Shown: positions 793-48,578 of the stretch, one piece after another | Numbering within the stretch: position 1 is the first letter of the stretch | Layout of the letters: the number at the start of each line of letters is the position of its first letter | Assembly (NCBI RefSeq): GCF_964204645.1 | Contig: NC_134035.1 | Span: 6,200,001-6,264,000 of the forward strand | Length of the DNA: 64,000 nucleotides | Reading direction: 5' to 3' | Origin: Tubulanus polymorphus | Lineage: Eukaryota > Animalia > Nemertea | Program-made: the position numbers and the translations under genes | Notes under the pieces: model-generated | The model's database searches: none | Told to the model about the DNA's origin: nothing | What the model saw: only the letters and a program-made list of their open reading frames with translations

Positions 793-3700
793 ATGGAGGA
801 ATTGAATCTCTCAGAAATGGAATCATTAACTGAAACTGAAAAACAACAGTTAATTGCTGTAATGAAACGAGCCAGGGTTAGTTTACTCTGCCTGTCAAAT
901 CAGACCAGTGACACAGTGTCACTTTGTTGACTGACGACAGTCACTTTTTTACAATCCAGCCTTATAAAGAGTAAAGTGTATTTTGTTTAACTTCCGTTAC
1001 GTGTTTTGGATCTTGATTTCTCAGGACTATTAAATCATTCATTTGACCTTGCATTATTAACAAGACCACGTCCACGTACGACGGCCTTATTACCGCACTG
1101 ATCGCACTTGTGCTTATCACTCGGCACTGATTAAAGAGTGAATTTACAACCTGCTCTCCACACAGAGAGAGAGAGAGAGCTACTGTTACTCTTAAGTGAG
1201 GTGCAGTTTTATTTGCTGCTCAAAACTATGGCCATCTGAAATAAGATCCAAACATTTACCGTACTGACTAAAAATCAACTCAAGCTTATACATTAAGAGT
1301 ACGCCGAAATTAAAATAAAGGCATAATTGAAAATAACAATATACAAATACACTACACAGGGTAAATGACTGACAAAATTGATATTTACATGAATAGGAAA
1401 CGCAATCCCTGGGAAACAATTCATTCCGGCCCATTTATTCAACTTTTAAAAGGCAAAATAATCTAATGAAAAAAAGAAACTTTGAAAAATTTATACAAGG
1501 TAAATGACTGACAAAATTGATATTTACATGAATAGGAAACGCAATTTATTCAACTTTTTTCGAACTGTAATGTACATTAAAATCAAGGCAAAGTAATCGA
1601 TCTTATTTTAGAATAATTATACATTGATACAAATATAAGATTTTATACAAAATAAACAAATGAAAAATTAACTAGAAAATTAAATTTATATATACTAGTT
1701 GATACAAATATCCATGAAAATTGATATGACAATAAGAATGTATGTGTCAAGTTATTTTTTTTTTATTGTAATTGATCTCGTCGCTCTTGAACGCTTTAAT
1801 TGCCCTGGTTTATTCGCTACTTTTGCGGTTTTCGGGATATTCAATTTTCTGTCACTGGACTTGATAACTTTTTCGATCGATTTTGTTTTTGATTTTGCAC
1901 TGAAAAATGTATTCATGATCGCATCCTTTTCTTCCTTCGATTTTTTTACACCATACTACGTGCGAAACGACGTGTTTGCTCAAACGAGGCGAAACTTGGT
2001 AGTTTCCTTGACCGTGTAAGGCTCGGCGAATATCTGCATGCTGCAGTGACCCGTGGCAATATGATATGTAGTGTATCTAAAAACTCCAATAATTAAGTAG
2101 GGGGTCTTATAGCTCAAAATAAAAGCATAGTTCATTAGTGCGTTGTGCATCAGGCGTGTCTGTTAGGGGTTAGGGAACATGGAACAGACCCAGTTTGCAA
2201 TTTATTAATCACTTTGCTGTCATTTCGAAGTAATAACAATTTGGCAAAATAAAGTGATTGTTAGATTTAGAAACAAAATCGGAAAAAAGTTTAGCCTAAC
2301 TCAAACTAAGAAACTAAAAACTACGATATATTACGAAAAGATTTACTTCACAAAATTTGCTCAATTTGCAGAGTGTATTGTTGAGTTTACCAAGGAAACC
2401 TCGTGTTATATAAAAAAACTTATTTCCAAATTCAATTTGCACAGTAGGGCTCATTTAGTGTTGATTTTAATATAAAATATTCAATTTTAGAATTCACAAT
2501 CATTGTTTTTTATTTCGTGACTGTGTTTAGTATAACCCGTGAGTTCATGACGGTGTCTGACGGTCTTCCTGACGGTGTCTGACGGTTCCTAGCGGTTCCT
2601 GACGGTGTTTAGTATGACCCTTAATTACAGATATAATATGATTTCAAGTGTTAAAATCGATAAGGAATAAATAAATATGTTATATTTCATTTCATCTCGG
2701 TTGATCTCGGTAAAATACGTCATCTCGGTAATAAGGATGACCGCAACTGCCAGTCCTTTCTAGGTCTAATGTCCAAAACAAACTGTCCAGCAGAAAATTC
2801 ATACTACGTTAACCTGTAGGTTTTAGTAGGTCTAAGACATTAAAGTTACTGCCAAGTTTATTCAAACCCAGTCAGAGCTCATTTCAGCTGTAAAGCCACT
2901 CAGTCTCAAGACCAGTCTATGCTCATTTAAGTTCTAAAGCCTCTTTTAACCCAGTCTTAAGCTTTTTTCAGTTTTAAAGTCACTGAGACCAGCCTAATCT
3001 CATTTTTAAGGTTCTATCGTACTGCTATAGATGATTGTACAACTCGGACTTGGTTTTAAGACTAAACAACAATGCATGGGTGGTGGAACCGTGGCATTTG
3101 GGGCGTTATTTGCTGGGCCAATATTTTACTATTTAGTTCTGCACATTTTCCAATCATAGAAAGCTGAGTTGTTCATTTCAGCGATAACATTTCCTGATAA
3201 TCTCAAAACACGAAAGGTCCCTATTACTACACTGAATTCAGTAAGTGAAACGGAGATTACTTTTAAAATCGCTATACGTATCTATACTCTACCTTGTACT
3301 ATTTCATAGGGATTTTCAAAATTGAAAAACTACCATTTTCTTCAACTAGAAATAGCCAAAATTGAAGTTGAACCGATGGCACACCCCCACCCAGCTCCCC
3401 TACTGGGGGTGCGATAAGCTGTTTCTGCCTGCCAAGCTTTCAGCCCCAAAAAATATTTAAGAGTTTCCACTATTTCCTATGGTCGGACCAAATCAAATAA
3501 GCTTCTGCCGCCCTGCAATGGCAAGTTTAATAATAAAGCATGCTCGAAACTGTGTCTGATGTCGGATATCTTACTTATTTCGTTAAAATTTTTAACTGTC
3601 TGATAGAAAAAATAACATAAATAGTTCAGGCAAGTACCATATGTGATCAATACTGAGATCATAATAACAGTCGGCGATTGTTATAATCAGCCACACTGGC

Positions 3701-6700
3701 GGCGGCGGTGTGCGATGTGTTTTGGCACAAGCTGATCATATTGTTATCTATATATACAGCCTATATATGTGTCTATAGTACCGTTCCTATTGTATTTGTC
3801 CTCAATTGATAATGCAGTTGAGTCTTTACTGATTATATGTTGTCAGTAAAGAATCGACGTCGATACTTACTGCAGTGATCGTTGCGTATGTTTTCGATTG
3901 AACGTCGTTCATTGTCAGGATTAAAACGATTGAGACTCGTGGATACCGAGATGAGTAGTAGGCCTACCACAGCCGTAGCAGCGGCAGCGGCTAGCAAGCG
4001 GTACACGGTCGGTCACGATAAACGACCAGCGCTGAAAAAGATTGAAGAAATTCATCCGGTTTTAGTCGTGCCCGAAGCACTCGTAAGTTCACTCAGTAAG
4101 GCTGAGCCTGTCTAGTTATACAGTTACTACTTGTGGTCAGAATTGGACAGAAATATGAGCTTAGTCCGGTCTTATCTTAAGTCTCCTGTATAGAACTGGA
4201 TCAAAATCTGCTTAGCATAGTTTTATTTTAAGTCTCGTTGATCAGGTTCATAGCGTCTTGAATGCACCATAATTAAGTGTAGGGCTACTGTTCGTTATAA
4301 GGAAACCTGACAAATTTTCAACTTTTGTTCCATTTTAGGAATTCGAGCAACAGGAAGAAAAATTGAATTTGAGGTAGGCCAAAGTTCAATTGAATTCTGC
4401 TCGATAAAAAGAAAACAACTGTGTTTCCGTGAGTAGAACGTGTTTTTAAACTATTTTCCTTCTTAGGCAACCGTTGGAAGGTCAACTGTATAAGTACACG
4501 AATGTAATGAAAGGCTGGCAGTATCGTTGGTTTACTCTGGATCCAGATACCGGATACTTTGAATACTATGAGGTACGTGTGTACTATGCGTCCAGCCTGC
4601 CAGGAGTGAATGCAGACTGTCGCACATGCAGCACGTGCGACAGTCGCCGTTTTCATTGTGCCCTCAAAAATAAGTTTGAAAAAAAGGCAATCTGAGGCAC
4701 TCTCCTTTGCTGAAAAGGGTGCTATTCTAAAAAAGACATTAATGTTGCATTATTACTTTTAATTGAAAAAGGATAAATTCTGTCAAAAATCTCTAATTAA
4801 GGCACAAGCGAATAGAATGCAACTCGGGTTCCTTCCCCAAAAAGGCACAAAATATAGTGGTGTAATTATTCACATAAGGCCAGTTGTATTCTCAAATTAA
4901 TGATTGACAATTTCAGTGTATAGTTCTATGATTGTGAAAAAGATGGCATGATTGTAAAAACTGTCATTTGGTTTTTCGTGTAAATAAATTTCTATTCGAT
5001 TTGATCAGTTTTCACTTGGAATCTGCATTGTTGAAATTTCTACATTGCTCGAGTGCTTTGCAAATGCATTAGGATAACATGAAATTTCAAAATTTTCAGA
5101 CCCACCTTTATCTGCTTAGCAGCTACGTCACTCACTGGTTGGGCATGTATACTGGCCCTTTTTGAAGTTGATGCCCTTTTTATTTCACTACGCTGTAGTC
5201 ATGGAATGGCCCTAGATCCATTCCTGCCTGTTGTCTTAAGATCTGAAACTGTTTTTACTTATTTTTCAGAAAGAAGAATATAAGAAAAATCGGCCTCGTG
5301 GTTCAGTGCACCTCGCTGTAAGTGTTCTTCTCTATATGAGCCGTTGTTCTGAGGGTTCCTCATTCGCTCCTCAATTACTCCCTCCAATCACTCCCTTATT
5401 CATCAACTAAACTGTTGATATTTTGCTTTTCAATCAATATTATCTGTTGCTGATGTTTTGTTGCTGTTGTTGATAATGAGCTCTATAGTTGCGCGCGTCA
5501 CGAATTATCATTACATTAATTCGAAATAAAGCTTTATCCGCGTGAGCTGAATTAGAGAATAGAATACATTAATACTGCTGCACCAACTGATTTCACAAAC
5601 TCTTTATGTATATATAGTACAGTTAAATGTTGCTGCATTTAGAGCCACTGGGACACTGAGTATCATTATTGCTGCTGTTATTTATAAATTTTGTGGCTTC
5701 ACAGATGGAAAAAATACATGACAATAATGCGCGTTTTGAATGTGCACCGATTTATACGAGGCTAGCATTTAGATTCCACCCTCAAGTTTGATAGGTCAGT
5801 AAAACACAAATGCAGTTCTTCGCTTATTGCAAAATAACAATTCGTTTCAACTTGAAAACGATCTATTTGCTCTGGAAATAACTGATAGTGACTAAACTGA
5901 AGCAGAGACTTTTTTTCATGAAATTTGGATATAACAGAAAGGTTGCGCCCCGTGGAATGCTATGGAATATCGTGGATAACAGTGTTATATTGTATGTCTA
6001 TTGTCGGACTCGAATTAGATATGATTTAGGTATTTAACCGGTGTATGAGTAATTTCTAGGATGTTGTTTTGGTTTTGAGTTGGATCAGGTGATGCCTCAT
6101 ATTTGAATAATAACTGCATCGAAAAATCTGTCACCGCAGTTTTTAAACGTCGAAGTAGGCCTAGCTGATATTGTGAACATATGATATTTTCATCCTCAGT
6201 GGCAGAAGGATAGATAGGTCTGTAGATGTAGATTTTGTGAATGAAATTCTGGTCGATGATTTTATAGCTATTAATATCGACTGATCACTGTTATAATTGG
6301 TAACTATAGGTTTTTGTTGTCATGTGCACTCTTACCAACAATTCACACTGTTATATTTCAATCGTTGTAAGGCTATGCTGTTTCTGATCTCTGTATAGTG
6401 TGATATATTATGGATATCCTTGTCAGGAAACACTTTATTCGTTAGTTTGTTTTAGTTGTAATGAATGAATCCTCTGGGACGAGTGGCTGATGTTATTTTA
6501 AGTGTGATATGATGTACATTGGCGATATTAAGTTGGTTTATTTCTAAATGACCCCTCTGGGAGATAACTGGAAAATAGACCGGCCGATCTAGAAGAGTTT
6601 TTGTGAACTACATCAACTATCTCCCAGTGTATTTTCACTTTGTTTTAATTTTTTTGACGGTCATCTTTTAGTTTCATTCATCATTCCATTTTACTAAATA

Positions 6701-9700
6701 TCTTGAGTATCGAATTCAAGCGTTAAAACATTTGTGATGCAGCATTTCATTTTAGGAGGTCGAATGAAATATTTTCTCATCTCTCACTCTTACTCACTCT
6801 CAGTTTTTCTCTTTGTAGGGAGCTGTTATAAGTCCTTCAGATGAAGATTCACAAACGTTCACATTACACGCTGCTAACACCGAAGTTTATCGTTTAAAAG
6901 GTTCGTTTGTACATTTCTGTCCATTTTCATTACCCGAGTATTATTTCTTGCGGTAACCAGTTTTTATCGACCAACACCTGGCTACTGAGATTATATTTAC
7001 GGTAGACTCCTCAGGGCCAGTCTATTCGAAACTGTGGGTTTATGCAACCAATCACCAAGGCCTAGTTTATTATTGAAGAGAAAATGTAACAAATAGTTTT
7101 TGACCATCATTTTTTGATGCTATGTAGGCCTAGGCCTTTGGCGAGTATATAGATGAAACTGTTCTGGGGCTAAAAGCTGTTTTGCTGTACTGTTTGTCAC
7201 CATCAGTGGAGCATTGCTATATCAACAGATGACTGTAGGCCTATGCCACCAGCTGTTACTGTCATTATATCATTGAAATCAATGTCGAATATCAGCGTGC
7301 CTAAAACATATCAGTTGATGAAACACTGTTTCAACCTTGAAAGGTGAACAATTAATACTCAACACTTTGTGTCAATTTGGGAATATTCCCCGGCTGAGGA
7401 GGCACCGAATGCTATGACGATTACAGTTACAATTTGTTGAGAAATAATAGATGTTATTGTTCGTTGAATTTTGCAGCATTTGACACACGAGAGCGTCAAC
7501 ACTGGGTGAACAGATTACGAGCCGTCGCTGAGTATCATACTGAGAACCTAGCGCAGAAATATCCGAGACGCGAGAGTAATAAATCAACGATATCTCCTTC
7601 ATCGGACGATTCGTACAACAGTAATACAGGTGGCGCTCATAACAGACATATCAATTCACGACCAATTACGCCACCTTCATCGTCATCGTCATCTATAGCT
7701 AGGTATGCCTCTCAATCTCAACTCTGATTAGGCTAAAAAATTGAACCTTGTTTCTGCGCTCAGCTGAGCTTAAAAGTTGACCCGGCCTATCTACCCTTTG
7801 AATTTTTTTACAAAAATCATGATGAATTTTACCACAACAGACCTGGCAGCTATAGATATGTACTGGTTACAAATTTTATTATGTTTTATAAAAATGACCC
7901 AGCCGCTGCGGAGAAACAAGGTATCATAAGTTTTAAAATCAGGAAACTAAGATATCTCTTAGTTAAAGTTCTGCCATCATTGCCACTACGAGTTGACTCA
8001 TAGCTGATCCTCTTTATACACTGTAAATGCTCAATGTAGAATGCTCAATGTACTTGGTCCGTCTCATCTATGGACCAAGTTGGAATGGACTTACTCTAGC
8101 AATAGTGAGAAAACTAACGAAAAAGTAGAATAAGCTCACAACTCTAGAAGACACTAATGACCCCTATTAACAAATCTAAACATTTCAGATCTCAATTGAA
8201 AGGACTATCAGTGAGCAATACATCACTAACAGAACCGTTTCGTCCAGTTAAAGAAGTCATCAAAGAAACAAACGAATGCGCATCGGAATTATCGCGTTGT
8301 ATCGATGACTTACCCACATCTGGTTCGTTATCTTACCCGACTGATAAGGATATATTATTATTGAAAGCGACGTCGTTAGCCGGTATTCATTGTTTAGAAC
8401 AGTGTTTATCTATTTTACAGTCTCAATACCAGGTGAGTAGAACCTCGAAAAACTTAGTAGCTACAAATGTTCCATGTGTGACACGTTTGTGAAATTTATT
8501 TCTCATTTTAGTATCATCAAGTGCAGAAAGCTAGTTTACCCAATGCTGTTGAATGGATTGAGCCTAATTTTACTTCAAAGTGGGTTGAGCCGATTTCATC
8601 GTTTTATAGTTCATTTTCAATTAGTTAAGACACATTGGAGTAAAACTGATCCCTAACCGCTGAACTCAATCCTGCCACCGGATATAATCAGTGCGTGATA
8701 TTGATTTGATTATTTTTGCAGACGTTCTCCAGTCATGGGTCGTCATCGGCGACAATTGAGTCAACACAGTCAGTCGTCTTACGGCACGGGAAGCAGTGTT
8801 GAAAGTGTACCAGAACCCGGTTAGTAGGAATAGCCCATTAGAGAACACGGTCCAGTTTAAAAGTTGTGGTCTATTTTGATACAGAATCGTGTCAATTTAA
8901 GGCCACTCCAAAAATTGTCTGTTTGGTGTTTGTTACCTGAATGTTAACTCTTTGCCTGCCACGCCTATTTTGTCAGGAAATGCTGCACGTTACCGGGATT
9001 TGTTAGATATCTTAAGAGATATCTTCATCAAATTTGTTTTATTGTGTTCATCTGGGTCCAGTTCCACAGTTCTGAGTTAAGATTTGACCCTGGGTTAAAA
9101 CATTGAAAATGAACTAACTTTAACTCAGAGTTAACTCTAACTCACAACTGTGGAACTGGGTCCTGGTCTTGCTTTTTCATGTAAAATAAGCAGCATTTAT
9201 TCTAGGAGTGATACAATCTGTAGCAATCACCAGTGCAGAGGGGGTATTGTGCAGAAAATAAGCCCATTCATGCGTGTTCAGCCCCCATTTCAATAGATGA
9301 TGTCACTAACACACTTCATAGAATGACTGCTGATAATCTGTTTTAGTAGTAAAACGCATTAAATCTATCGTTAAAGTTAAGAAACAGTACGGTTTTGGCA
9401 GGAAAGTGATGGGAGATATCGAACGTACCAGTACGTTTTTGGCAGGCGATGAGTTAAAAGCGTTTCTCATGTTTTTATGTTTTATCATTTTAGTAATAGT
9501 GAATCACGATGAAGATGTAGAAGATGCGCAGGAATACACCGATACAGAACTAGGTGCCGTCGAAGAGCACAAAAGTGTCATTTTGCATCTACTATCACAG
9601 CTAAAATTAGGCATGGATCTGACGAGGGTGAGTTATTCATAATCTCAATGCGTCCATTTATTAATCAGTAATCATACGCACAGGTCAGGTTTGATTGTCA

Positions 9701-12492
9701 GGAGTTGAAATCTGATGCCCGTTAGATGAGTGGTAGTGGAACTGTGTTTGCCTTGTATCAAATTAAACAGTACTGTGTAGGTTTTATTAGAAATCTTCCG
9801 CTACTAATGCATAATAGCTTCATCAGGTCAATGAGACTCATTATCAGGAATTAAGCTACCAAAAAAAATCTTTAATCGTTTTCTTGTAGGAATGTACTCA
9901 AGACAAAGCGGGTGGACAGTACCACATAATCGGGACAATATCATCATATGTTTGGCCAAACAATATGCCGTATAGGCCCCCTATCATTAGAGATTTTAGT
10001 CAGCAGTTTAACATTAACATTTCTTATGAACTCCTCCTGGAAAAAATCCTGGATCTGCGCCTGGTATGCATGTTTGAAGCTTAATATCAAAAACCTCTCA
10101 TATACTGCATTTTATCGATAGGTGGTGCTTCCTACTTTTATACTAGAGAAACGTTCATTGTTAGAGATGTTTGCTGATTATATGGCTCATCCCGATATAT
10201 TTCTGAGGTAAGCATTAAATAGAGACCTTTTTCACGAAGGCATTACTCGTGTCACTTGGTATATAACTGGTGTCCATCTATGCACTGCAGGCCCGTAGCC
10301 AGGGTCCTCCAAGGGGGTGCGATATAAACTATGAGTGGACCTAAACCACGTCAGTAAAGCCAAGCGGCGAAGAATTTGATAACTGTGCTTTATTTCTGGA
10401 GTATTTGAACATTTCATACATTATGGGGTTTATTGAAAATGTACGTACACTGGTCTTTAGATTACCAGGAGAGTGAACATGGAGGAGAGAGTAGAAAATC
10501 AGCATTTTTGAGCGCAGCACCTTGATTTAATTTCTACTTTTTTTATCCGGAAATACATACATATAATAGATATATATGTATAAGAAACATTTGAATGAAA
10601 TGTCTTTCAAGAGAAATAGGGACAATTTTTTTTCATCAGTTAAATAGCAGACCTTCGCACCCGACGCACCCCCCTCTGGCTACAGGCTTGCTATTTAATT
10701 TACAGTCTCGTCCGTCATAAATAAAACCCACATTACCTTTCAATCATTTTGTAACTTGAAATTTTATAAAAATTATTCTTGTTTTCTGTTCATGCGTGAA
10801 GTAATGATTAATGAACACAATTGATAATGATTATTTTAAGGATACCAGACGGACCAGATGCAGAAACCAGAATGATGTCTGTTTTAGAATGGTATTTAAC
10901 ATCTTTACATGCAGGAAGGAAGGTAACTACGGTATTCACTAAACCTAAGCTATCATTTCAAACTGGACTGCATGAATATAAAGAGTCTATATTATTATCA
11001 AATCTGTATTTCTACTTTTTGATTGCGACTCAAACTTTTTCTGAAGAGTTACAAATATCTTATAGAGGATTTACCATATGGTGAAATTCAGAGTCCCTAT
11101 TTATTTATCATTCATTATTGCTATGCTATTTTAGTTAATTTAATTTATGCCAATTTTGAACGGTTAATTTCAGGGTTCAGTTGCTAAGAAACCGTACAAT
11201 CCAATAATCGGTGAGACGTTTCATTGTTCGTGGGACGTCGAGGATCGAGGGGTCGCTACACAGCAACAGCAGACGGATTCATTAGCGACGTCTGCTCAGA
11301 AACCGACTCGAATGACTTACACTGCTGAACAAGTCTCCCATCATCCACCGAGTAAGTCATTATTACTAGCTAGCACCTTTTCACTGTGCTCGGACAAATA
11401 TTTTGAATGAGTTCAATTGAAAATCCACAACTGCCAATTGTCTAAGTAGGAAATCATGCGCCTAGGACTAAATCAGGGTTTCTGAGAAATCTGCTCTGTC
11501 AGGACCACCTGATTTACTCCTAAATTTGGCATTAGAAAAGATTCTGGTAGAAAATTTATAAGGAATTCTCTTTTAATTTACTGTTAAGATATTTTCACAT
11601 GACTTTGTTTTAGTTTCTGCGTTCTATTTCGAATGTCCTGATAAGAGAATTTACATGAATTCGTCAATATGGACGAAATCGAAATTCATGGGCATGTCAA
11701 TAGGAGTTTGTATGATCGGAAAAAGTAAGTGTTTTACATTCTCTCTGTGATATCCAAGCCTATAATAAATTTCAGGGTCAAGACAGATGAAATCTGTGAA
11801 TTTGACACCTATGACATTTCTGCCTCACAAGAATTCATCAAATTCTTTGATTTTAATCTTTAAAGAATTGTAAATTTATTCAGTGGGTTATTCTGTCAAT
11901 CATGTCTTGGTTTTAACCATGTTGTGGCATGCACTTAAAATTTCATGTCTTGCAGCTTTGTAGCGAGACAAATCTCGCGAAGAGCTTTCAGTGTAGTTTG
12001 TTTTCAATCGGCTCTTCTGTTTGTTCTAGTGTCGTTGAATCTATTGGATCACGATGAAGAATATGTGTTTACATTACCTAGTGCGTATGCGCGTTCGATA
12101 CTGACAATACCCTGGGTTGAACTCGGTGATAAAATCAATATAACCTGCACAAAAAGCGGCTACTCATCGTCTATTACATTTCACACGAAGGTTAGACATC
12201 TCTGTAATATCTGTTTATGTAATAACTCACTCACTCAGCGCTCGGTCACTGCAACACTCATATCTATATGAAATATCTCAATCAATATCTTATTGACCAG
12301 AATTAAGTCCTAATATGGAATATTGGTAAAACTTGTGATATGTTTTGGATTTTTTTCCAGCCATTTTACGGAGGGAAGTTACATCGGATCACGGCTGAAG
12401 TTAAAGACGGTAAATCTGGTAATGTAACATGTCGTGTGAATGGTGAATGGAACGGAGCTATTGAATTCCAATATAGCAACGTAAGTTACTGT

Positions 12493-12545
<53 letters not shown>

Positions 12546-14624
12546 ATAGTTAGATGCATGAGCCAATTGGCCCTTTCATCCTCATTGTCCTCTTCGCGTC
12601 TCATTGCCCATTATGCGGTTCGCCTTATAGTCGCAACTTGGTAGAAATTTTATACATATAAATAGTTTGTGAGTGATTGTTAGTATATAAGTACGAAAAG
12701 GATTCCCCCACTCGTGTGACACCCAGCTGTGGATCCGGCAACACCTCTATGACTTAACCAATTACTGACCAAGTCTAGGTGCACGGGGTAGACAACTACC
12801 CCACCGACGTGCACTGTTATCAATGATGAATAATCAATTCATCTATTCGATCACCTACGCTGAGAATGTCGATTTTTAAACACTCCACCCCATGCCGCAA
12901 AAATACTTTTTTCACCCCCAAGTTGGCATGGTGTCGTGATTAATAAAATCCCTCAACAGATTTCATGATGTGGAGGAAAGGAGAGAGTGATAGGGATCAG
13001 GGTTTGAATAATAGACTATTGTCGTGTCACATATTACGGCGTTCATGTATTTAGTTATTCATTGTGTTGTTTTAGGGTGAAAAAAAAGTGATTGACACGG
13101 AAACGCTGCCAATAATGAAAAAGAGGTGTCGACCGATTGAAAAACAAGGCGATTTCGAGTCGCGAAAACTTTGGCAAAAAGTGTCGAAATCGTTGAAGCT
13201 CGGTGATGTAAATACAGCCACAGAACATAAAAAATATGTAAGTTGAATGCAAGCCTGCTGTACTTGACCTACTAACCTATGGAGATTTTCAAATAATGAT
13301 GTATACTAAAAATGAAGCCCATGTCAAGTTGAAGTGGGGCATAAAATTTCAAAGTTCCTACACATTTCCATCAAGTCACACGAAAATGCAAGATATATTG
13401 AAATATCTTGTGAAGTCTAGATTAGATTTAAAGCAGGCCACAGAATTTCAATGTCTTCTTTCTGGGCTATTAGACTGGGTCCAGTTCCACAGTTCCGAGT
13501 TAAAATTTGACTCAGAGTTAACACATTGAAAACGAACTAACTTTAACTCAGAGTTAACTCTAACTCACAACTGTGGAACTGGGCCCTGAGGATTTATATA
13601 GTTAAACATACGCATATATTGATGTGTATTGAGCAGTGAACATTAAATAGCTCCAACCCATAGCACACACTATACAACTAATTCAGAGGCTGGTTGCTGT
13701 AAAGTTGGTTAGAGTTAACCAGTGGATAGTTAACGTAGCGACAATCAAAAGTTAACTGCTGGTTATCATTAACCAACTTTTTGAGCAACTGGCCCCTAAT
13801 CTGCAGACATGACCAGTGACATCACTGGTACTCATTACTAACCCTAACCCTAGGTCAGGTGACCAGTGACATCACAGCTACTCAATCTAACTAGCTAACA
13901 CTACATCAGGTGACCAGTGACATCACAGCCACTCAGTACTTAAAGCTAACCCTGACGCTATGTCAGGTGACCAATGACATCACTGCCACTCAGTACTAGA
14001 AGCTAACCCTGACCCTACGTCAGGTGACCAATGATTTAAGGTGTTTTTATTTAAGCTACTCAGAAACTCGCATGCAAGAGCCGCATATGATCACGTGGTA
14101 CAAATCGAATTGCCTTAAATAAATGACTGACCTGAATTTTCTGCGATTGAAATAGCCGCCATTTCGATCTATTCACGAACACACTTCTCATAGGGGCCAT
14201 CTTGAAATACGAACCAACTGGCCTGTACGGACGAGTTGGCTGCGTATGGTACTCGTATTGGTAACTCGCCTAAATAAACGAGCCGAGATGGGTACTCGAG
14301 TATGGCGAGTTGGTTAGATAAATGAAAAACGCGCTTTTCGTGGGAACGCGCTTTTCTAGTTTGAAAATGATTTATTGTTTTTGTAGCTGGAAGATAAACA
14401 AAGACACGGTGAAAAGTACAGGACAGATAATGGAATTTCTTTCCCAACGAAGGTACGGCTGTTTTTGTACTGTTACAACTGATAAACAGTGTGGTTGGTT
14501 CTGTTGTTTTATGATCGGTTTATATTGTGTATACTTTCAGTTTTTCCACCGAGAAGAAAACTCCGACACGTGGGTTTATAATAACACACTCAAACAAACT
14601 GCTTCATTGTCGTCGTCGACATGA
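793..14624 (+). CDS. OSBPL11: Oxysterol-binding protein-related protein 10/11-like (PH domain + ORD), multi-exon, two alternative first exons
   Basis: Phase-consistent GT-AG exon chain: 793-876 (alt 1a) or 3951-4082 (alt 1b), 4339-4373, 4467-4572, 5270-5317, 6819-6900, 7477-7702, 8189-8432, 8512-8579, 8722-8819, 9494-9627, 10122-10207, 10841-10922, 11174-11351, 11614-11724, 12030-12190, 12361-12480, 13076-13237, 14387-14452, 14541-14624. PH motifs [20 protein letters not shown] and [10 protein letters not shown]; ORD motifs [34 protein letters not shown] and EQVSHHPP. Confidence 0.93.
1770..2045 (-). mobile_element. Decayed coding fragment, possibly the C-terminus of a Mutator-like transposase, in OSBPL11 intron 1
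   Basis: Minus strand reads [34 protein letters not shown], frameshift, then [12 protein letters not shown]...[29 protein letters not shown]. Short inverted motifs CCTTATTACCG (~1085) and CGGTAATAAGG (~2726) flank the region. Confidence 0.35.
9053..9163. mobile_element. Palindromic MITE with GGG(T/C)CC termini (PIF/Harbinger-like family)
   Basis: GGGTCCAGTTCCACAGTT...AACTGTGGAACTGGGTCC. Near-identical copy at 13475-13587; relatives at ~13687-13796, 16557-16639, 40724-40857, 60281-60392 and 62380-62520. Confidence 0.75.
10288..10690. mobile_element. Non-autonomous DNA transposon/MITE in an OSBPL11 intron
   Basis: Terminal inverted repeats CAGGCCCGTAGCCAG...GGGGGTGCG and CGCACCCCCC...CTGGCTACAGGCTTG; no clear TSD seen. 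Confidence 0.6.
12492..12550. repeat. (TAG)n microsatellite
   Basis: About 17-18 TAG units beginning ~12 nt after the donor of exon 12361-12480. Confidence 0.95.
13808..14035. repeat. Minisatellite, ~49-59 bp unit, 4-5 copies
   Basis: Recurrent GTCAGGTGACCA(G/A)TGACATCAC...CTAACCCT units. Confidence 0.85.
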
Positions 14625-20000: not shown

Positions 20001-23000
20001 AATTTGTAGAAAAAATGATAATCGCTTTGGTATGGCGCCTATTCGATTCTTTTTCACCGAACTGGCCGAAAAATGTATAAAATTGCTATTGATCAAACGG
20101 GTATTGATTCCTAAATCGCCGTCCAAGATACACAGGGCCGGACCCCTACCTAGAGTGAAGAAGAGGTCCCCGATAAATGTGCCATTATTCTGCAAATGGG
20201 GTAGATAACGAATTTCGGTTATATGCATGAAATCCATTGATCCTGAGAGACAGATTGATGATTGAATAAGGGATTCCCTGGACTTTTTTGCTTGGAGTCA
20301 GGGTACCCAAGCACGTTGGGTCATTCCCTTCGATATTCGGCTCGGATGTACTGGCAAACCTGTACTGGGATATCCCTCCTTTTCTTAAGGTTTGATTATT
20401 TCAAAAGTATGGTTGGGTATGTGCGGGGTAAAACCACTTCGGCGTGTAATTATGATGCTGGCCTAGCTGCCATAAGCAGGATTTCCCCTCGATTTGCGCG
20501 CTTATATATGAACTAAACGCTTTCTTGTTTTTACTATAGGATATAGAACATTTTAGAATAATAGTGGTTGAGCTCTGCTTAAAATGAAAACTATGTACTC
20601 TTATAGTTTTTTAAAGGGAAGAATCTCACCTGAAATTAGTCGGGTAAAGTTCGCTGGTATGGATAAAAATGGTACCATAAGCTGCAGTGCAGCAGAATTT
20701 TCCTGCTGTATTTAACGTCATAATTAACGGAACCAAATTCGTCTCTCCTAGGAACACAAGTATACAAAACAAGATTCAAAAACCTTTTATGATTAGGTTT
20801 CTAGAAACTAACCTGTATGAACGTACACATGTAATATACTTACCGACAGTTTCAGGACAGAACGTCGCAGCTACCAAAACTAGGCCGGTTATCCCGTAAA
20901 GCAACATCATAAATGCTCGTCTTCCAGTACTGAAAAATACATGATGCATGTACATTTGAATATATTTTACGGAGGCGTCCTGGGGACATCTCTATTAAAA
21001 GAACATTTTCTAGGTTAATTCCAAGTTTGTAACTCGGAATAAACTAGTTTTCTCAGTTAAAAGCAAGCGAGATTTTGAGGTTTATTTCGAGTTTGTGATT
21101 CGGAATAAACTAGTTTTCTCAGTTAAATCTGATTTTCCGAGGTTTATTCCGAGTTTGTAAACCTCCTAAATTCCCAGATACAAACTCAGAATTAACTTTG
21201 AAATTATCCAACACGCTTCCGTAATATTTGATTTTATGCAACTCTTATGTGACTTAACCTTACAATTGTAGTACAATGTGCATCACAATGCAACTTGGTA
21301 TCTCAATAGCAGCAGCTAAAAAATAATTAGCAAATCTACCTCCAGCCATAACTGTCGTACTCAATGTCATCCCAAAATAAGTTAGACTTGTAAAAGACCT
21401 GCGAAAAAACAAACTTTTTGAAAATACGACAAACATCCTCTCATTATATGAATGCATTATGCGTACCAGATAATAGCTTCCAGTATCGTGTAAAGACGCA
21501 GTTTTGGATGTTTGAGAATCTGTATAATTCCAATCGTTTCATTATTCGAGTCTCCACTTCCCTTAGAACAGCTGACCATATTTCTAAACACTAGTTTAAC
21601 TCCGTTCACAACCGAACTTTTATCTGAATATAACATATTTTAGTCTATGAAATATTCATTTTCATGAATGAATTGAAATATATCGGGTATTTTTGACAAT
21701 TTACTTTGTTTTTCTGTGTTTTTTCTAATGGCAGAAATGGCGGCTGGTGAAAGCGAGCGTTTGTTAAATTTCGCTGCTTTCCTCAAAATTCTGATCGCTT
21801 CTTCGGGTCTGGAATTAGCGACGAGCCACGCAACAGATTCATCGTAGAACCTAATCACAAAATGATATGAAGTATATCTCCAATTTTGAATGGATATTTC
21901 ATTATCGAAAAATTCTATTTACCAAATTCCTAGAATGGCGAAACAAGGAATAATAACCCCGACGATTTGCAGGTATTTCCAGTGAGTGAAATAGTAGCCG
22001 CAAATTCCAGTTAAAAGCATTCCCATTGTAAATGAAAGCATGTGAAATGCGTTAGCGAATGAACGTTGATCGGTCGGATACCATTCACAAACCAAAACAT
22101 AACCAACTAAGGCAGTGCCCTAAAAGAAAAGACCAAAGCATCTAAAGCGGGGGACGAGAGAAGAAATAATTCTCGTAAAATGATTTTTCTATCTTATTTT
22201 TTTGGATCTTTCTCTGAATTATACATTAATTTCCCATTAGCAATTTTCAAACATTTCTAGGAATTGAATATTTTTTAGGCTTTAGTTCAACATCGATTAT
22301 AGAAATCATTTACTATATTGAAAACTCCGCTAAAGAATCTCGTTGTAATGAAAAGTGTTTCGTTGACAAAAATGATAGGAAGAAACATCGAAACAGCGAA
22401 CAATAAAGAACAAACTATATAGGGAATCTTCCTTCCAAAATAATCCGACCAAGGTGGCGCTACTATACTTCCGGTCAAGACTCCCGCGAAATATAACGAC
22501 ATTGTTAGTGCATTCATGTGATTGGATTCACAAACCCACGAAAACTGAAAATAGATAGAATAATGTCAACATTTTTATAGTGATTGGGTCATAGCGATTT
22601 CTGCAGAATGACTGACTGACCTGTTCGGTAAGAGTGTAATAACCGTGTGACTGGTAATAGTAACCGTTTTGACAGACGACTGTGGTATTATCTGTAATTG
22701 ACTTGAATTGTCGACACTGATCGAGTTTAATTTCTCCATCCTCACTAGTTGTATATGGTATCGATTGGTTCATTGTTTGATTCACCAAAGACAGTTTACA
22801 ATGATGTTCTGGAATCCATCCTGAATTTTGATAATATGAATTTTTTTTCCTATCACGTAATTATGATTAAAAGGGCCTACGTTTTTAAATAATGTACTGT
22901 TTACCTTGAAATATCAAACCGAATGTACTTATAGCCGCCGATAAACGCACTATATCAATAATAAACAATTGAAATATCTGATATCTTCCATATCTCCCTA

Positions 23001-27571: not shown

Positions 27572-29130
27572 ATACATTTTTGTATAATTGCCTTAATTTG
27601 GCAAATCCAATCAGATACATATAAATCTTTTTTGTATAAGTCGTACAAAATATTATACATTACTAGCTTCAGCTTTGACTTGTTAGCATTCAAAATTCAT
27701 TTGTTCCAATGTTTAATCATTCTAAGTTTAATAGTAGTCGATAAAGGTAATCTGCCAGTCTCGCCATATATCATAGTATTATGGCAAAATTTCGTTACTT
27801 TTAGAACTAATCTACAAAACCTTGTGTGGACTTTTTCTAGGATATCGATATTTTCATGGCCCCATATTTCGCACCCGTATAATAAAATTGGTGCCACACA
27901 ACAGTCAAATAATTTTTAAAGTAAGCCTGGAGGAAGACTATATCTTCTGCCTTTTTGAATAATAGCAAACATTGCTCGAACAGCTTTGTCGTGAATTGCT
28001 TTTTTTCGCATTTGCAAATTTTCCATCCCAATTAAACAAAATTCCAAGATAATTGTACTCATCTACTCTTTCCAATGTCTCATCACCGAATAGAAAATCG
28101 GGAAGGTTTTTTAATCTTTGCTTCGATCTTGCGAAAATCATTATTTTCGTTTTATCAATGTTAACGAATAACTTGTTTACTTGGCAATAATCAAAGAGTA
28201 TATTTGAATTATTTTGTAATTCAGATTCTGATTCTGCAAATAAAATTGTGTCGTCTGCATATAATAATACAAATAATTTCAGTAATATCTCAATTTCTTC
28301 TTCATAAGTTCTTTTGTATACTTTACTAATAAAGCCGAGTGAGTTACAGTTGTTATCGTTGAAGGATTAATCAATATCGTAAAGGAAAATAGCGAATAAC
28401 AGGGAGGAAAGACTTTCACTCTGTCTTACTCCGATGTTTGAAGGGAAAAAATTTGAAGTATCACCTTTAAACGATACACCAAGATTTGGAATTCAAATAG
28501 AGGTTGTGCACGGTGTTAAAAAAGAGACCTTTTATACCTAAAGCCATCATCTTTTTCCATAATGAAATTCTCCATACGGAGTCAAGGGCCTTGCGGAAGT
28601 CTTGCGAAACAACAAAAAAGACGTCTACCTTGATTAAGGCATAGCTCAACAATAGACTTAGTGTGAATAGATGATCGGTAGTAGAAAACCCCGATCTAAA
28701 ACCTGCTTGATTTTCACTTAAAAGTTTATTTACATTCATAAAACATGTTAATCTATTATCAAGGATATTTGTAAAAAGTTTGCCTAAACAACTTACTAGC
28801 GTTATACGTCTATAATTATCTGTACAATTAATATTGCCTTTATTTTTTAATATTGGTTTAATAGAGGTTATAGTCCAGCTTTCTGTGATAATGCCACTCA
28901 TTAATACAATATTAAAGAGTTGAAGATCGGGAATTTCTTATCATTTCATTACAAATTAGATCCATACCGGTAGCTTTGTTGTTTTTTTAAGGAAGAAATA
29001 GCTTTATTTAATTCTATCATAGTTATTTCAGCATTAAGCATAGAGTCATCTATATCGTCTAAAAGTAGATCTGTTTCCGTATCCAAAACTTGGTCTCATA
29101 GTGAGCGTTTAGGTCAGCAAAGTGATCAAA
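27572..29130 (-). mobile_element. Degenerate non-LTR retrotransposon RT (RTE-X/CR1-like)
   Basis: ENQAGFRSGFSTTDHLFTL, DFRKALDSVWR, GVRQSESLS, LLYADDT, YNYLGI, PILLYGCEIWG, IYGETGRLPL across several frameshifted ORFs. Confidence 0.88.
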
Positions 29131-30572: not shown

Positions 30573-33508
30573 TTAACCAATTTCTTCTAGTTGATGTTCA
30601 TCGACAGTCGGGTTTAACAAGTTGTTTTTAGGTCGGTCGATATCGCTGATAGTTTGAGGCATCGGTACACCTCTAGTTTCCGGTAAGGGTAACATCAGTA
30701 AAGCGGTTACCAGTCCAATACATCCGAGAATCACGCCCGGCAACCAAGATATAGATAGAGCCTGAAACAATTCAATCGCAATGTTGAAATGTAAAACAAG
30801 TGACAGGATTGAAAATGCACGAAATAAAAACCTACCAAATAAGCGGCGAATGGTGCTGTCATCGAACCTATTCGGGCAAATGCCGATGCAATACCCACAC
30901 CGCGGTTTCTGAAAAATAGATAATAGTACAGTGTAAAAGGAAACCAATTTTCTCTTTTAAGTTATTTTAAAGGAAGAATCTCACCTGAAGTTAGTCGGAT
31001 AAAGTTCACTGGTATGGATAAAGATTATGCCAAACGCTGCTGTGCAGCAGAATTTTCCTGCAGTATTTAACGTCATAATTAACGGAACCAAATTCGTCTC
31101 TCCTAGGAACACAAGTTTTACACAAGATTCTAAGACATTTTATGATAGAATTGTTTCTAGAAACTATCCTGGACATTATCCCTACCGACACTTTCAGGAC
31201 AGAACGTCGCAGCTACCAAAACTAGACCGGTTATTGCATAAAGCAACATCAAGAATACTCGTCTTCCAATACTGAAAAACATCGTACATATAAATATGTA
31301 CATTTAAATACAGTATTTGATTTTATACAGCTCTTGTACAGCTCTTATACAGCTTACAATTGTAGTACAAAGTGCATCACAATGTAACTTGGTATTTCGA
31401 TGGCAGCAGCCAAAAAATAATTAGCAAATCGACCCCCGGCCATTATCGTCGTACTCAGTGTCAACCCGTAATAAGTGAGACTTGTAAAAGACCTGCAAGA
31501 AGGAAAAAAAGATTTCAGTGAAGAAAACCAAACGCGTGCGTACCCCACTTAGCCTGAATTATTCAGAAAATGAAACACATAATCGGCCGTAAGACATAAA
31601 AGTCTTTACGTAAAAGGTATGTCTATGTTCGTAACACGAATGTGCATTGAACAATACCGATACTTACCAGATAAAAGCTTCTAGTATCGTGTATAGACGC
31701 AGTTTTGGATGTTTGAGTATGTGTAAAATTCCAATCGTTTCATTATCCGAGTCTCCACTACCCTTAGAACAGCCGACCATATTTCTAAACACTAATTTAA
31801 CTCTGTGCACAACCGACCTTTTATCTGAATTTAATGCATAATAAGAATGGTGAATAAATGCAAGGAAACTTATACTATGCAGGGGTAGGAGCAATTTTAG
31901 TTCATCTATTAATCAACTTATTCTCAATTCGTCTGACGTGATCGAGTTTTTGATTTGGAGGATACATATTACCTGTGAGTAAGATCGCCATGCTCGATGG
32001 CAACGTTGCATTTTACTATAGATTATGAAACATTTATCATAGAATTAAGATGAAAATAATTTTTTTCATATCTTATGAATGATTGAACAGTCAATTGTTC
32101 ACCTTGCTTAGCAGTTTCTGTGGTTTTTCTAATAGCAGAAATGGTGGCTGGTGAAAGCGAACGTTTGTTGAATTTCGCTGCTTTTCTCAAAATTCTGATC
32201 GCTTCTTCGGGTCTGGAATTAGCGACGAGCCACGCCACAGATTCATCGTAAAACCTTATTACAAAATAATATGATGAATATCTAAAATTTTGAATGCACA
32301 TTTTGTTATCCAAAAAATGTATTTACCAAATTCCTAGAATGGCGAAACAAGGAATGATACCCCCGACGATTTGCAGGTATTTCCAGTGAGTGAAATAGTA
32401 GCCGCAAACTCCAGTTAAAAGCATTCCAATTGTAAATGAAAGCATGTGATATGCGTTAGCGAATGAACGTTGATCGGTCGGAAACCACTCACAAACCAAA
32501 ACATAAGAGGCTATGCAGGCACCCTAAAGAAACAAGCAAACCATTTAAAGCCGGGGACGGAAAAAATTATTCTATTGTTATTCAGATCTTTTTTGTAATT
32601 TCTTTCTTATGCATGTTATATCAATTTCTTGAGTAATTCTTAACGGTCTAGGAATTGAATAATTTTTAGGCTTTAGTTCATCATCGATCATAGAAATCAT
32701 TTACTATATTGAAAAGTCCGCTAAAGAATTTCATCGTGATTAAAAATGTTTGGTTGACAAAAATGACAGGAAGGAACATCGAAACAGCGAGCATTAGAGA
32801 ACAGACTATATAGGGAATCTTCCTGCCAAAATAATCCGACCAAGGTGGCGCTACTACACTTCCGGTCAAAATACCCCCGAAATATATCGACATTGCTAGA
32901 GCGTTCATGTGACTGGATTCACAAACCCACGAAAACTGAAAATAGATAAAATAATTTTATCATTTTTCTTTTGATTGGATCATTGCGATTTCTGCAGAAT
33001 GACTGACTGACCTGTTCGGTAAGAGTGTAATAACCATGTGACCGGTAATAGTAACCGTTTTGACAGACGACTGTGGTATTATCTGTAATTGACTTGAATT
33101 GTCGACACTGATCGAGTTTAATTTCTCCATCCTCACTAGTTGTATACGGTATCGACTGGTTCACTGTTTGGTTTACCGTAGGCAGTTTACAATGATGTTC
33201 CGGAATCCACCCTAAATTTCAAAATATGAAAGTTTTTATTATGTTATCAGTTGGTTTAATGTTAGAGTAATTTTAGTTGAAATTTATGATACATATCATG
33301 CAATGAGGTTCAGTGCTAAAGATTTCATGAAAGTCTACTTTTAGGGCCTACTTTTCGGAATACATATAATAAGATATTGTTTACCTTGAAATATCAGATC
33401 TAGTGTAGATATTGCCCACGATAAAGCCGTTATTTCGATAATGATTAATTGAAAAATCTGATATTTTCCATATCTCCCTAAATCCTTCAAAGCGGTTTCA
33501 ACTTCCAT
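30573..33508 (-). CDS. SLC22/Orct-like transporter, copy B
   Basis: Same 11-exon layout as copy A; ATG at 33508 (MEVETALKDLGRYGKYQ), C-terminus LPETRG...EHQLEEIG*; no stop or frameshift noticed. Confidence 0.92.
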
Positions 33509-34931: not shown

Positions 34932-35357
34932 TGGGTTTCTTGTGTTTTGCTCACGTCCGCAAGCACGATGAAATCATTTAGTACATATTTGAATTTATTT
35001 GCCAATATCATGATGTATGAAAACTAACTAATTGCTTAGTGCATGTCTGCGAGCATGATTAATGTTAATTGAGATCGAATGGAAATAGAATGACAAAGTA
35101 AGATTAGACTTGATGTATGTCACAGTAGATAAAAAGAATTATATACATATTACAGTATATGGGATTGAATAATATGAACACATGTACGCAACAGTTGCGG
35201 TATAAAATGTAAATACGTAATGATCGAATTAAAAGGATTATTCAGTGTACGTCCGCTGATTCCTTTACTGCATCGCATACGAAGAAAATAATGATTTTTC
35301 TAAAACCTAGAATAGACTATGTGTCATTTATGTAATTTAACTGTTTTTGTATTTTCT

Positions 35358-36186
35358 ATGGTGGCTGATAAGGGCCAGAGCGTAAAATTTGGCGCGCCAA
35401 AACGGAGAAAATTCCGTTTTGGCGCCCTCGCCAAAACGAAATTTCGTTTTGGCGCCCCCACCAAAACAACGAAAAACGTCGAAATTTCTCTAAAAGTTCG
35501 TTCTGGCGCGCCAAAACGGAGAATATTCCGTTTTGGCACCCCCGCCAAAACGAACTTTAAACCACGTAAAATAATTCTATATATACGTAAAATATTTTCA
35601 TATATGCAAATTTATGCAAATTACACACAAGATCAACGCGCCAAATTGAAAAACAATTTTACTGTGGTTGAATGCTTGTTTTGGCGGGGGCGCCAAAACG
35701 GAAATAACCGCGCCAAAACGAAATTTTCTTAGTTTTGGCGCGCCAAAACCAACTTTTAGAGAAATTTCGACGTTTTTCGTTGTTTTGGCGGGGGCGCCAA
35801 AACGAAAGTTCGTTTTGGCGGGGACGCCAAAACGGAATTTTCTTCGTTTTGGCGCGCCAAAACGAACTTTTAGAGAAATTTCAACGTTTTTCGTTGTTTT
35901 GGCGGGGGCGCCAAAACGAAAGTTCGTTTTGGCGGGGGTGCCAAAATGAAAGTTCTCTCCGGAATTTTCTCCGTTTTGGCGCGCCAAAACGAACTTTTAG
36001 AGAAATTTCGACGTTTTTCGTTGTTTTGGCGGGGGCGCCAAAATGAAAGTTCGTTTTCTTTGTTTTGGCGCGCCAAAACGAACTTTTAGAGAAAATTGGA
36101 CGTTTTTTTTCGTTTTGGCGTTCTGGCGTTCTGGTGCCCTCATTTACATACCATGAATTTTACGCTATGGCCCTTATCAGCCACCA
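35358..36186. mobile_element. Foldback MITE, long copy with internal ~90-130-bp tandem units
   Basis: Same TGGTGGCTGATAAGGGCC termini as 23461-23682; two oppositely oriented arrays of TTTTGGCG..CGCCAAAA units. Confidence 0.88.
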
Positions 36187-47284: not shown

Positions 47285-48553
47285 ATGGGTTCATTGGATA
47301 GGAAGTGTTCTATCAAGTTTCCTCTGAATGAGGTAAACGGAAAAATTCTTCATCAAGATGTAATTAACGCTATAAAGGACAGTGCCGACGGTGACGTGAG
47401 TAAAATCGCAGCGATTCAAATAACGTCAAAATTTTCTGAAACAATCCGGATTAATCTTTCGAGGGAATAAAATCACTCCGGATGATGTAGATTTAACCTT
47501 TTTGTCTGTGAAAATAGTCGATGCTCCGTATGAGATGTCGGATCTGACCATTGTCAACTTTATTAAAAATTATGGTGATTATGTTGAAGGATCGGTAAAA
47601 AAAGGCGTGATAAGGGACACTCAAATATATACTGGGACCAGATATTTGAAATTGAAACAAGTCAATAAAGTTATTCCAAACTTCACATCAATCGATGGAT
47701 TCCGCGTAAGAGTGTACTGTGAGGGTATAGGGTGTCAACATTGCCTTGGCGATCATCGCTCAGCTGACTGTCCGTCACGATTTAAGTGTTTCAAATGTGG
47801 CGCCGCAGAGCATAAAGCTCGTGATTGTACCGTGACTCTGAGCGACACGATATCCAACGAAGCGCGTGACTATTGCGAGAAAACGTCAAGCGAACCGCTG
47901 TCCAATACTATTACAAATAATGTATTAGTAATCGGTGATTCTAACCTCCGTGACTTCGAGTTTCCGAATGGCACGATTATTTGCCAGCCTGGTGCTAGCG
48001 GTGAAAAGATTTCATCGCTTCTGAATAAAGCTGACAATCAGATTCTAGATCGATCGTCGATTACTGACGTTATTCTCCATTTAGGTACAAACGATATAAG
48101 TAACAACAAAAATGACAGTGACACTGTAGTGGTGAATCTGTCCTTAGCCATGGCCAAAACAACGGAACATTTCAATGAAGCCCAGATTCACTTCTCTAGT
48201 ATCATTCCAAGAAAAGGTAACTCCAACAACGTAAAAGAGTACAACAGCCTTGCAATAGCAGTTAACAACCATATCGGGAAACTATGCGCGGAACAGAATA
48301 TCATGTTTATTGATAATGACACTATATTGAAACTTAAACCGTCTGGTAAAGCTTTGGACCACTTTTATTCGCCGACCGATAAAAGAGTGAAACCGGCAAG
48401 CTTGCATTGCTTAAACACTTTTGTGAGGCAATAGATGGCGTCACTAGTGATGCTTTCTGCACACCGACCTCGGCAAAACGAAAGGAGAGATCACTATCCG
48501 GAACACCACCTTCAATAGAAAAAACCAGGAAAAAACAATACGTTGAATATTAG
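47285..48553 (+). pseudogene. LINE ORF1: RRM-like region + two CCHC knuckles + SGNH/GDSL esterase, two frameshifts
   Basis: CQHCLGDHRSADC, CFKCGAAEHKARDC, VLVIGDSNLR, VILHLGTNDI; frameshifts near 47430 and 48388. Confidence 0.85.
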
Positions 48554-48578
48554 TCATACACCATGACTTGTTATTTGT

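Follow-up and report, generated by a model that had tools for sequence, protein, structure and literature searches.

Alternative first exons add or omit an SHD1-like N-terminal helix in an ORP10/11 lipid exchanger of the nemertean Tubulanus polymorphus, a possible route to Rab targeting

The stretch of Tubulanus polymorphus DNA analysed here (RefSeq assembly GCF_964204645.1, contig NC_134035.1, positions 6,200,001 to 6,264,000; hereafter the window, 64,000 nucleotides in full and numbered from its first letter) is eukaryotic DNA of about 37% G+C that carries a gene related to OSBP on its forward strand. RefSeq names both products of this gene "OSBP-related protein 11-like": XP_074659922.1 (isoform X1, P0276) and XP_074659923.1 (isoform X2, P0178). 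Two mutually exclusive first coding exons, E1a and E1b, each with its own ATG, are spliced to one microexon, and only the E1a isoform has a helix, resembling the SHD1 helix of Rab effectors, at its N-terminus. The coding parts of the gene are as follows:

793-876, forward strand: E1a, alternative first coding exon of 28 codons, ATG in good context, donor gttagt, phase 0
3951-4082, forward strand: E1b, alternative first coding exon of 44 codons with its own ATG, donor gtaagt, used in RefSeq isoform X1
4339-4373, forward strand: microexon of 35 nt common to both isoforms, acceptor ttttag, donor gtaggc, phase 0 to 2
4467-4572, forward strand: first PH-domain exon, acceptor tcttag, donor gtacgt, Pfam PH match with E 0.0029 on the exon alone
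5270-5317, 6819-6900, 7477-7702, 8189-8432, 8512-8579 and 8722-8819, forward strand: downstream coding exons, first part (the downstream exons together encode the rest of the PH domain, the linker and the OSBP-related lipid-binding domain, ORD)
9494-9627, 10122-10207, 10841-10922, 11174-11351 and 11614-11724, forward strand: downstream coding exons, second part
12030-12190, 12361-12480, 13076-13237, 14387-14452 and 14541-14621, forward strand: downstream coding exons, third part
14622-14624, forward strand: stop codon TGA

E1a, used in isoform X2, encodes the N-terminal two thirds of the helix, and the microexon encodes its acidic C-terminal third (11 residues and two nucleotides of an Arg codon). 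E1b lacks the helix motif and had no Pfam match when scanned as a single exon. Joined exon models were compared with database proteins; searches starting from the window used single exons, and later steps used the annotated protein X2. By script comparison, E1a, the microexon and the first PH exon reproduced the first 75 residues of X2; with E1b in place of E1a, the same join gave the N-terminus of X1, and the two isoforms are identical downstream of their first exons. Exact spliced mapping placed every codon of X2 on the window (724/724) in 19 GT-AG exons spanning 793-14621, followed by TGA. Orthologous proteins aligned to the window by tblastn mapped the whole gene, with their N-termini on 805-876, and the E1a DNA is single-copy in the genome. 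The original prediction had drawn both first exons, with donors GTTAGT and GTAAGT, and a microexon running from phase 0 to 2 into the PH exon at 4467. All three turned out to be exact: E1a as the N-terminus of X2, E1b as the helix-less start of X1, and the microexon in both. Two repeats were seen in the introns of the gene: a direct duplication of about 50 bp within the 3.4-kb first intron (1366-1425 and 1497-1546; ggtaaatgactgacaaaattgatatttacatgaataggaaacgcaat) and, in another intron at about 12490-12560, a run that translates to poly-Val in one frame.

The identity of the gene was approached through its ORD. Exon 11174-11350, which matched Oxysterol_BP (PF01237, E 2.4e-11) and reads AEQVSHHPP at its end, was searched against 1.84 billion representative proteins and returned full-length ORP10/11-like proteins, several of which had an N-terminus of the E1a-plus-microexon type immediately ahead of the PH domain. 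A profile search with nine such proteins led to X2, and X1 was found in the same cluster. X2 matched vertebrate ORP10 and ORP11 at 47-50% identity over more than 90% of the length, with corresponding exons, and its best full-length matches were all named ORP11-like, ORP10 or OSBPL11. The ORD of X2 bears the EQVSHHPP signature, and an N-terminal PH fold was predicted by AlphaFold2 at residues 43-146 (predicted local confidence, pLDDT, >92), with PF00169 and PF15409 on record. ORP9-like representatives begin directly at the PH domain, score lower and are without the helix. Judged by these comparisons, and as had been proposed, the gene is the ORP10/11 orthologue of Tubulanus and encodes a lipid exchanger of the PH-ORD type, nearer to ORP10/11 than to ORP9 by match names and scores.

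The N-termini of all retrieved proteins were scored with a profile of the helix. A search of invertebrate proteomes for helix, PH domain and ORD in one protein had been suggested along with the original prediction; the architecture was found in ORP10/11 orthologues from 10 phyla, spanning Cnidaria to amphioxus. Searches with the N-termini of Pomacea and Ptychodera, which depend on shared 5-mers, recovered members of the query's own phylum only. The phyla and their members are these:

Cnidaria: Nematostella, Acropora, Oculina, Xenia, Dendronephthya, Hydractinia and Clytia
Platyhelminthes: Macrostomum
Mollusca: 16 species
Annelida: Lamellibrachia
Brachiopoda: Lingula
Nemertea: Tubulanus
Arthropoda: Parasteatoda
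Echinodermata: four species
Hemichordata: three species
Cephalochordata: Branchiostoma

The helix was missing from every one of about 60 vertebrate ORP11 sequences, which ranged from sharks to mammals, with a profile score below zero in each; the original prediction had named no such module in vertebrate ORP10/11, and for ORP11 these sequences agree. Isoforms that lack the helix owing to an alternative first exon occur in at least five phyla besides Nemertea. In Ptychodera, Parasteatoda and Nematostella, the annotated helix-less isoforms join a different first exon to the segment that the same microexon encodes; Lingula has its alternative exon spliced directly to the PH exon; and a helix-less form is present in Lineus and Littorina. 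The locus of Nematostella vectensis (L146; GCA_932526225.1, OW051987.1, 10001-11272) has two first exons and a microexon, as in Tubulanus:

L146:10001-10075: helix-less first exon
L146:10942-11046: helix exon, ending after "RAK" in phase 0, at the same place as in Tubulanus
L146:11238-11269: microexon of 32 nt (35 nt in Tubulanus), with the same phases, ending in phase 2

The order of the first exons is reversed between the two animals, the helix-less exon lying upstream of the helix exon in Nematostella and downstream of it in Tubulanus. Since the same layout is found in Nematostella, the pairing of two first exons with one microexon predates the split between cnidarians and bilaterians. The date of that split gives the layout an estimated age of more than 600 million years.

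Any exon model that rests on RefSeq is a prediction, and E1a might in principle be an artefact of the gene model or an exon of an upstream gene. We find this barely credible: proteins annotated independently, and transcript contigs, from 10 phyla have this same N-terminus right ahead of the PH domain, the frame, phase and microexon are kept in Nematostella, and E1a was the best match in the whole genome to a profile of its orthologues.

That genome-wide match was obtained by scanning all six frames of the 268-Mb genome with a profile built solely from orthologues of other phyla (E1a, E 8.2e-6). The next three matches were all helix exons of RabBD genes, one rabphilin-like on C3 (E 4.3e-5), one Slp-like on C1 (E 0.0095) and one RIM-like on C8 (E 0.016), and each of them adjoins a FYVE_2 match. 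AlphaFold2, run with 29 orthologues, predicted a single helix at residues 14-39 of X2 (pLDDT about 70-77), with the PH fold starting three residues later. When 37 ORP helices were aligned by hhalign with five RabBD helix exons of the Tubulanus genome, the probability was 97.9% (E 4e-13, score 53). The four invariant columns of the RabBD alignment (E, V, R and E) correspond to E16, V23, R26 and E34 of X2, which are among the most conserved positions of the ORP helix. The original prediction had recognised an SHD1/RabBD pattern in this helix from the sequence alone, and the pattern holds at the level of profiles, in the genome scan, in hhalign and against solved structures.

A short segment rich in E, K and Q could still be a generic acidic amphipathic helix that merely resembles SHD1, and the single-sequence searches of Pfam and the PDB, with E-values from 0.01 to 1.4, were weak enough to invite that reading. 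The profile comparisons leave it very improbable. With 11 ORP sequences, hhalign gave a score of 50.3 (probability 97.6%), compared with 8.4 on average and at most 14.8 in 200 composition-keeping column shuffles of the RabBD alignment and 12.3 for the reversed alignment. Two profile searches, run separately, both ranked an SHD1 helix first among 177,635 PDB sequences, that of melanophilin (2ZET_C; E 0.026 with the 11-helix profile and 0.011 with the 37-helix profile), and the 18 PDB matches also included Slp2 helix-Rab27A fusion chains and rabphilin (1ZBD_B). A chance resemblance would also have to account for the top three non-self matches in the genome all being RabBD helix exons. The likeness to SHD1 is specific, because the genome, PDB, Pfam, hhalign and invariant-position tests agree. 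It is best explained by common descent of the ORP helix with SHD1, and on this sequence evidence the helix very probably belongs to the SHD1 family.

In the Tubulanus genome itself, a helix exon of the RabBD type is present in at least five genes, of rabphilin-like, RIM-like, Slp-like, melanophilin/MyRIP-like and Noc2-like kinds. The exons lie at C3:6101653-6101745, C8:12315647-12315748, C1:19911229-19911324, C1:4596910-4597014 and C2:5130326-5130412. In each of the five genes a separate exon encodes the helix and lies kilobases upstream of the one for the zinc finger.

Residues 1-43 of X2 were modelled together with Rab3, GTP and Mg. The Rab3 partner was a full-length open reading frame (ORF) on a metagenome contig (L078:72-737) that agrees at every position with the Tubulanus Rab3 exon over 40 residues. 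The predicted complexes scored 0.79, 0.79 and 0.77, compared with 0.02 for the best of three controls; in a benchmark, as high a mark was obtained for 51 of 78 solved complexes and for 2 of 108 mismatched pairs, a calibration that is rough when small molecules are present. The runs had at least 51% of contacts in common, with partner pLDDT of at least 66. Predicted contacts on Rab3 fell on VGIDF at the end of switch I, on the interswitch strands and on switch II. Together these regions make up the canonical effector surface of Rabs. On the helix, the predicted contacts (residues 16, 19, 20, 23, 26, 27, 30 and 34) lie on a single face, and their conservation is significantly higher than that of the remaining helix positions (3.35 and 2.24 bits, respectively; permutation p 0.002). 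Structure prediction had been put forward as a check of the Rab-effector idea, and in the model the helix does lie on the effector surface of GTP-bound Rab3.

That an SHD1 can work by itself has support in the literature. Melanophilin SHD1 on its own is reported to be required, and also enough, for binding of Rab27A-GTP (PMC9120966); JFC1 (Slp1) has no zinc finger, and its SHD1 is the main Rab8A-binding element (PMC2018616); and in effectors of the FYVE_2 family the SHD1 helix is set against switch 2 of secretory Rabs (PMC11231147). Overall, we lean slightly towards the view that the ORP helix binds a Rab. As to the Rab genes of Tubulanus, those for Rab3, Rab10 and Rab27 each consist of several short exons. 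The sole single-exon Rab among the strong Ras-family matches of the genome was a Rab9-like gene (C5:20460024-20460518, L019), and the single-exon genes among the Ras-family matches were Rab9, Rap, Rho and Ras-like only; a single-exon Rab3, Rab27 or Rab8, looked for as a partner in the model, was not among them.

The explanation that we on balance prefer is that ORP10/11 has a relative of the SHD1 helix that can be switched in or out and that would serve in targeting by Rabs. The proposed sequence of events is as follows: choice of the first exon gives either an isoform with the helix (26 residues, 14-39, three residues ahead of the PH domain) or one without it. The helix would engage an exocytic Rab of the Rab3/Rab27/Rab8-10 group in its GTP-bound state, at switch I, the interswitch and switch II. 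Together with the adjacent phosphoinositide-binding PH domain, it would permit joint detection of Rab and lipid, and the lipid exchange performed by ORP10/11 would thereby be directed to Rab-marked secretory or post-Golgi membranes. The isoform without the helix would rely on the PH domain alone. The analysis establishes how the exons are arranged, both isoforms, the depth of conservation and the likeness to the SHD1 family; we infer the binding of a Rab, the identity of that Rab, the choice of promoter and the effect on localisation.

Several observations weigh against this proposal. Vertebrate ORP10/11 work without the helix. X2 has no CxxC anywhere, so no FYVE-type zinc finger follows the helix, and no SG.WF motif, so there is no SHD2 of the SGAWFF type; both absences had been pointed out from the start. 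The ORP helix, at about 26 residues, is some 8 residues shorter than that of rabphilin, which has 34 (PMC2018616). The equivalent of melanophilin R35 (position 37 of X2) is K, L or N and unconserved in ORP helices, and in melanophilin a change of R35, even to K, is reported to abolish Rab27A binding (PMC9120966). The similarity to RabBD/FYVE_2 that had been predicted for a profile search was borne out between profiles and fell short in Pfam: positions 1-33 of FYVE_2 were matched by 7 of 11 ORP N-termini below the gathering score (best E 0.012), the Tubulanus exon alone gave no FYVE_2 match and chance-level Pfam matches only, and a FYVE_2 scan of the genome did not recover the exon in the window. 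The predicted Rab3 complex may reflect recall of solved Rab-SHD1 complexes; it speaks for likeness and not for binding or for any particular Rab. A switch by promoter choice, as opposed to splicing at the 5' end, is suggested by a single feature, the two mutually exclusive ATG-bearing exons; CpG and G+C profiles around E1a and E1b were uninformative on promoters.

Some of these points would suit a helix that is derived from SHD1, or similar to it, that has ceased to bind a Rab or never bound one, and that has some other task: regulating or extending the membrane binding of the PH domain, dimerisation, or contact with another partner. Such a helix could be shorter than RabBD alpha-1 and dispense with SHD2, the zinc finger and a conserved R35 equivalent, although the four invariant RabBD positions would then have been kept across 10 phyla for another reason, and SHD1 by itself is reported to be sufficient in melanophilin (PMC9120966). 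A single conserved face would suit any partner, whereas in the predicted complex it is that very face that meets the canonical effector surface, and the controls scored close to zero. The helix lies just three residues from the first strand of the PH domain, and the ORP9/10/11 group dimerises through other regions, as stated in PMC10243569, which cites Zhou et al. 2010. We regard a role apart from Rabs as rather unlikely, and the switchable, Rab-targeting helix as the better account of the data.

Other features of the window lie outside the ORP11-like gene. They are listed here by position:

21640-22788, 32023-33164, 42828-44710 and 54084-55233, reverse strand: transporter gene in four tandem copies spaced about 10-11 kb, whose exon ORFs are nearly identical
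28467-28901, reverse strand: separate reverse transcriptase fragment
35319-36046, both strands: long ORFs that overlap one another and consist of a repeated peptide unit (…FRFGAPAKT…NVEISLKV…)
47502-50882, forward strand: apparently intact non-LTR (lacking long terminal repeats) retrotransposon
56711-57564, forward strand: remnant of a Tc5/pogo-type DNA transposase, in which ORF 56985-57329 matches HTH_Tnp_Tc5 (E 8.5e-18)

Downstream of the ORP11-like gene, the transporter copies make up a recent tandem array; one of the exons gave matches to MFS_1 and Sugar_tr, and the copies resemble organic ion transporters of the SLC22 type. Of the two ORFs in the retrotransposon, ORF1 (310 aa) contains a CCHC zinc knuckle together with a GDSL-like esterase region, and ORF2 (767 aa) combines an EEP endonuclease with a reverse transcriptase. 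The repeated peptide unit at 35319-36046, encoded on both strands, indicates a tandem DNA repeat, not genes.

The novelty of these observations lies in one place. Both isoforms were already annotated, here and in many other species, so that the exon structure is not new, a case for which the original prediction had made a proviso of its own. What is new is the reading of the helix as SHD1-like: none of the annotated isoforms of this and other species has a domain call on the N-terminus, and no description of a RabBD-like helix in any ORP was found in our literature searches, including a study of OSBP evolution (PMC10243569). ORP9, ORP10 and ORP11 have been studied almost solely in mammalian cells, where their targeting is credited to the PH domain, phosphatidylinositol 4-phosphate (PI4P) and partnership with ORP9. 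Should the helix bind a Rab, the ORP10/11 exchanger of most animals would have a second, isoform-specific targeting signal, and non-vesicular lipid transfer would be tied directly to the exocytic Rab system. The helix would then also be a natural, minimal SHD1 acting outside a FYVE_2 domain. The gene is in addition an example of a layout, an alternative first exon with a common microexon, that has been kept since the cnidarian-bilaterian split.

A wider reconstruction is offered more tentatively, as a possibility that falls somewhat short of probable. ORP10/11 may have been an effector of the Rab3/27/8 type in the common ancestor of cnidarians and bilaterians, with a stand-alone SHD1 helix, switched by exon, that would place exchange of the phosphatidylserine/PI4P type on secretory or post-Golgi carriers in most animals, and the module would have been lost in vertebrates. 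Such a loss, if true, would explain why a cell biology centred on vertebrates overlooked it.

The comparison with known systems begins with the vertebrate orthologues. Vertebrate ORP10 and ORP11 are orthologous to the Tubulanus protein throughout PH domain, linker and ORD, but the N-termini of vertebrate ORP11 are of low complexity and lack the helix motif found in Tubulanus X2. Human OSBPL11 has come up as a proximity hit of both Rab5A and Rab11A (PMC6639074); because it is without the helix, any link to Rabs there must use other surfaces.

Among Rab effectors, the RabBD of the FYVE_2 family (PF02318; rabphilin-3A, Noc2 and RIM) has in its alpha-1 the pattern (P)DLSxL(S/T)ExE(K/R)xx(I/L/V)xxV(M/I)x(R/K)Axx...E, in common with the ORP helix. 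The core of the ORP helix, RA(K/R/Q), is of the rabphilin/Noc2 type and less like that of Slp/Slac2, and a rabphilin-like exon was the best non-self match in the genome. Unlike in rabphilin, Noc2 and RIM, the helix runs straight into a PH domain, in a protein that is otherwise a lipid exchanger. Rabphilin, Noc2 and RIM bear C2 or PDZ domains. In Slp/Slac2 proteins the conserved R is followed by D (D25 of melanophilin), whereas ORP helices have a nearly invariant A there; the SHD1 of melanophilin was the best match among solved structures, but the ORP protein is without the SHD2 of the Slp/Slac2 proteins.

Within the ORP family, ORP1L also has a shorter isoform that lacks its Rab-binding module. 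The module of ORP1L differs from the helix described here, in that it consists of ankyrin repeats, an unrelated fold, binds Rab7 and belongs to another ORP subfamily. Even so, ORP1L provides a precedent for an N-terminal Rab-binding module before the PH domain of an ORP, according to PMC10243569, which cites Johansson 2005 and Tong 2019.

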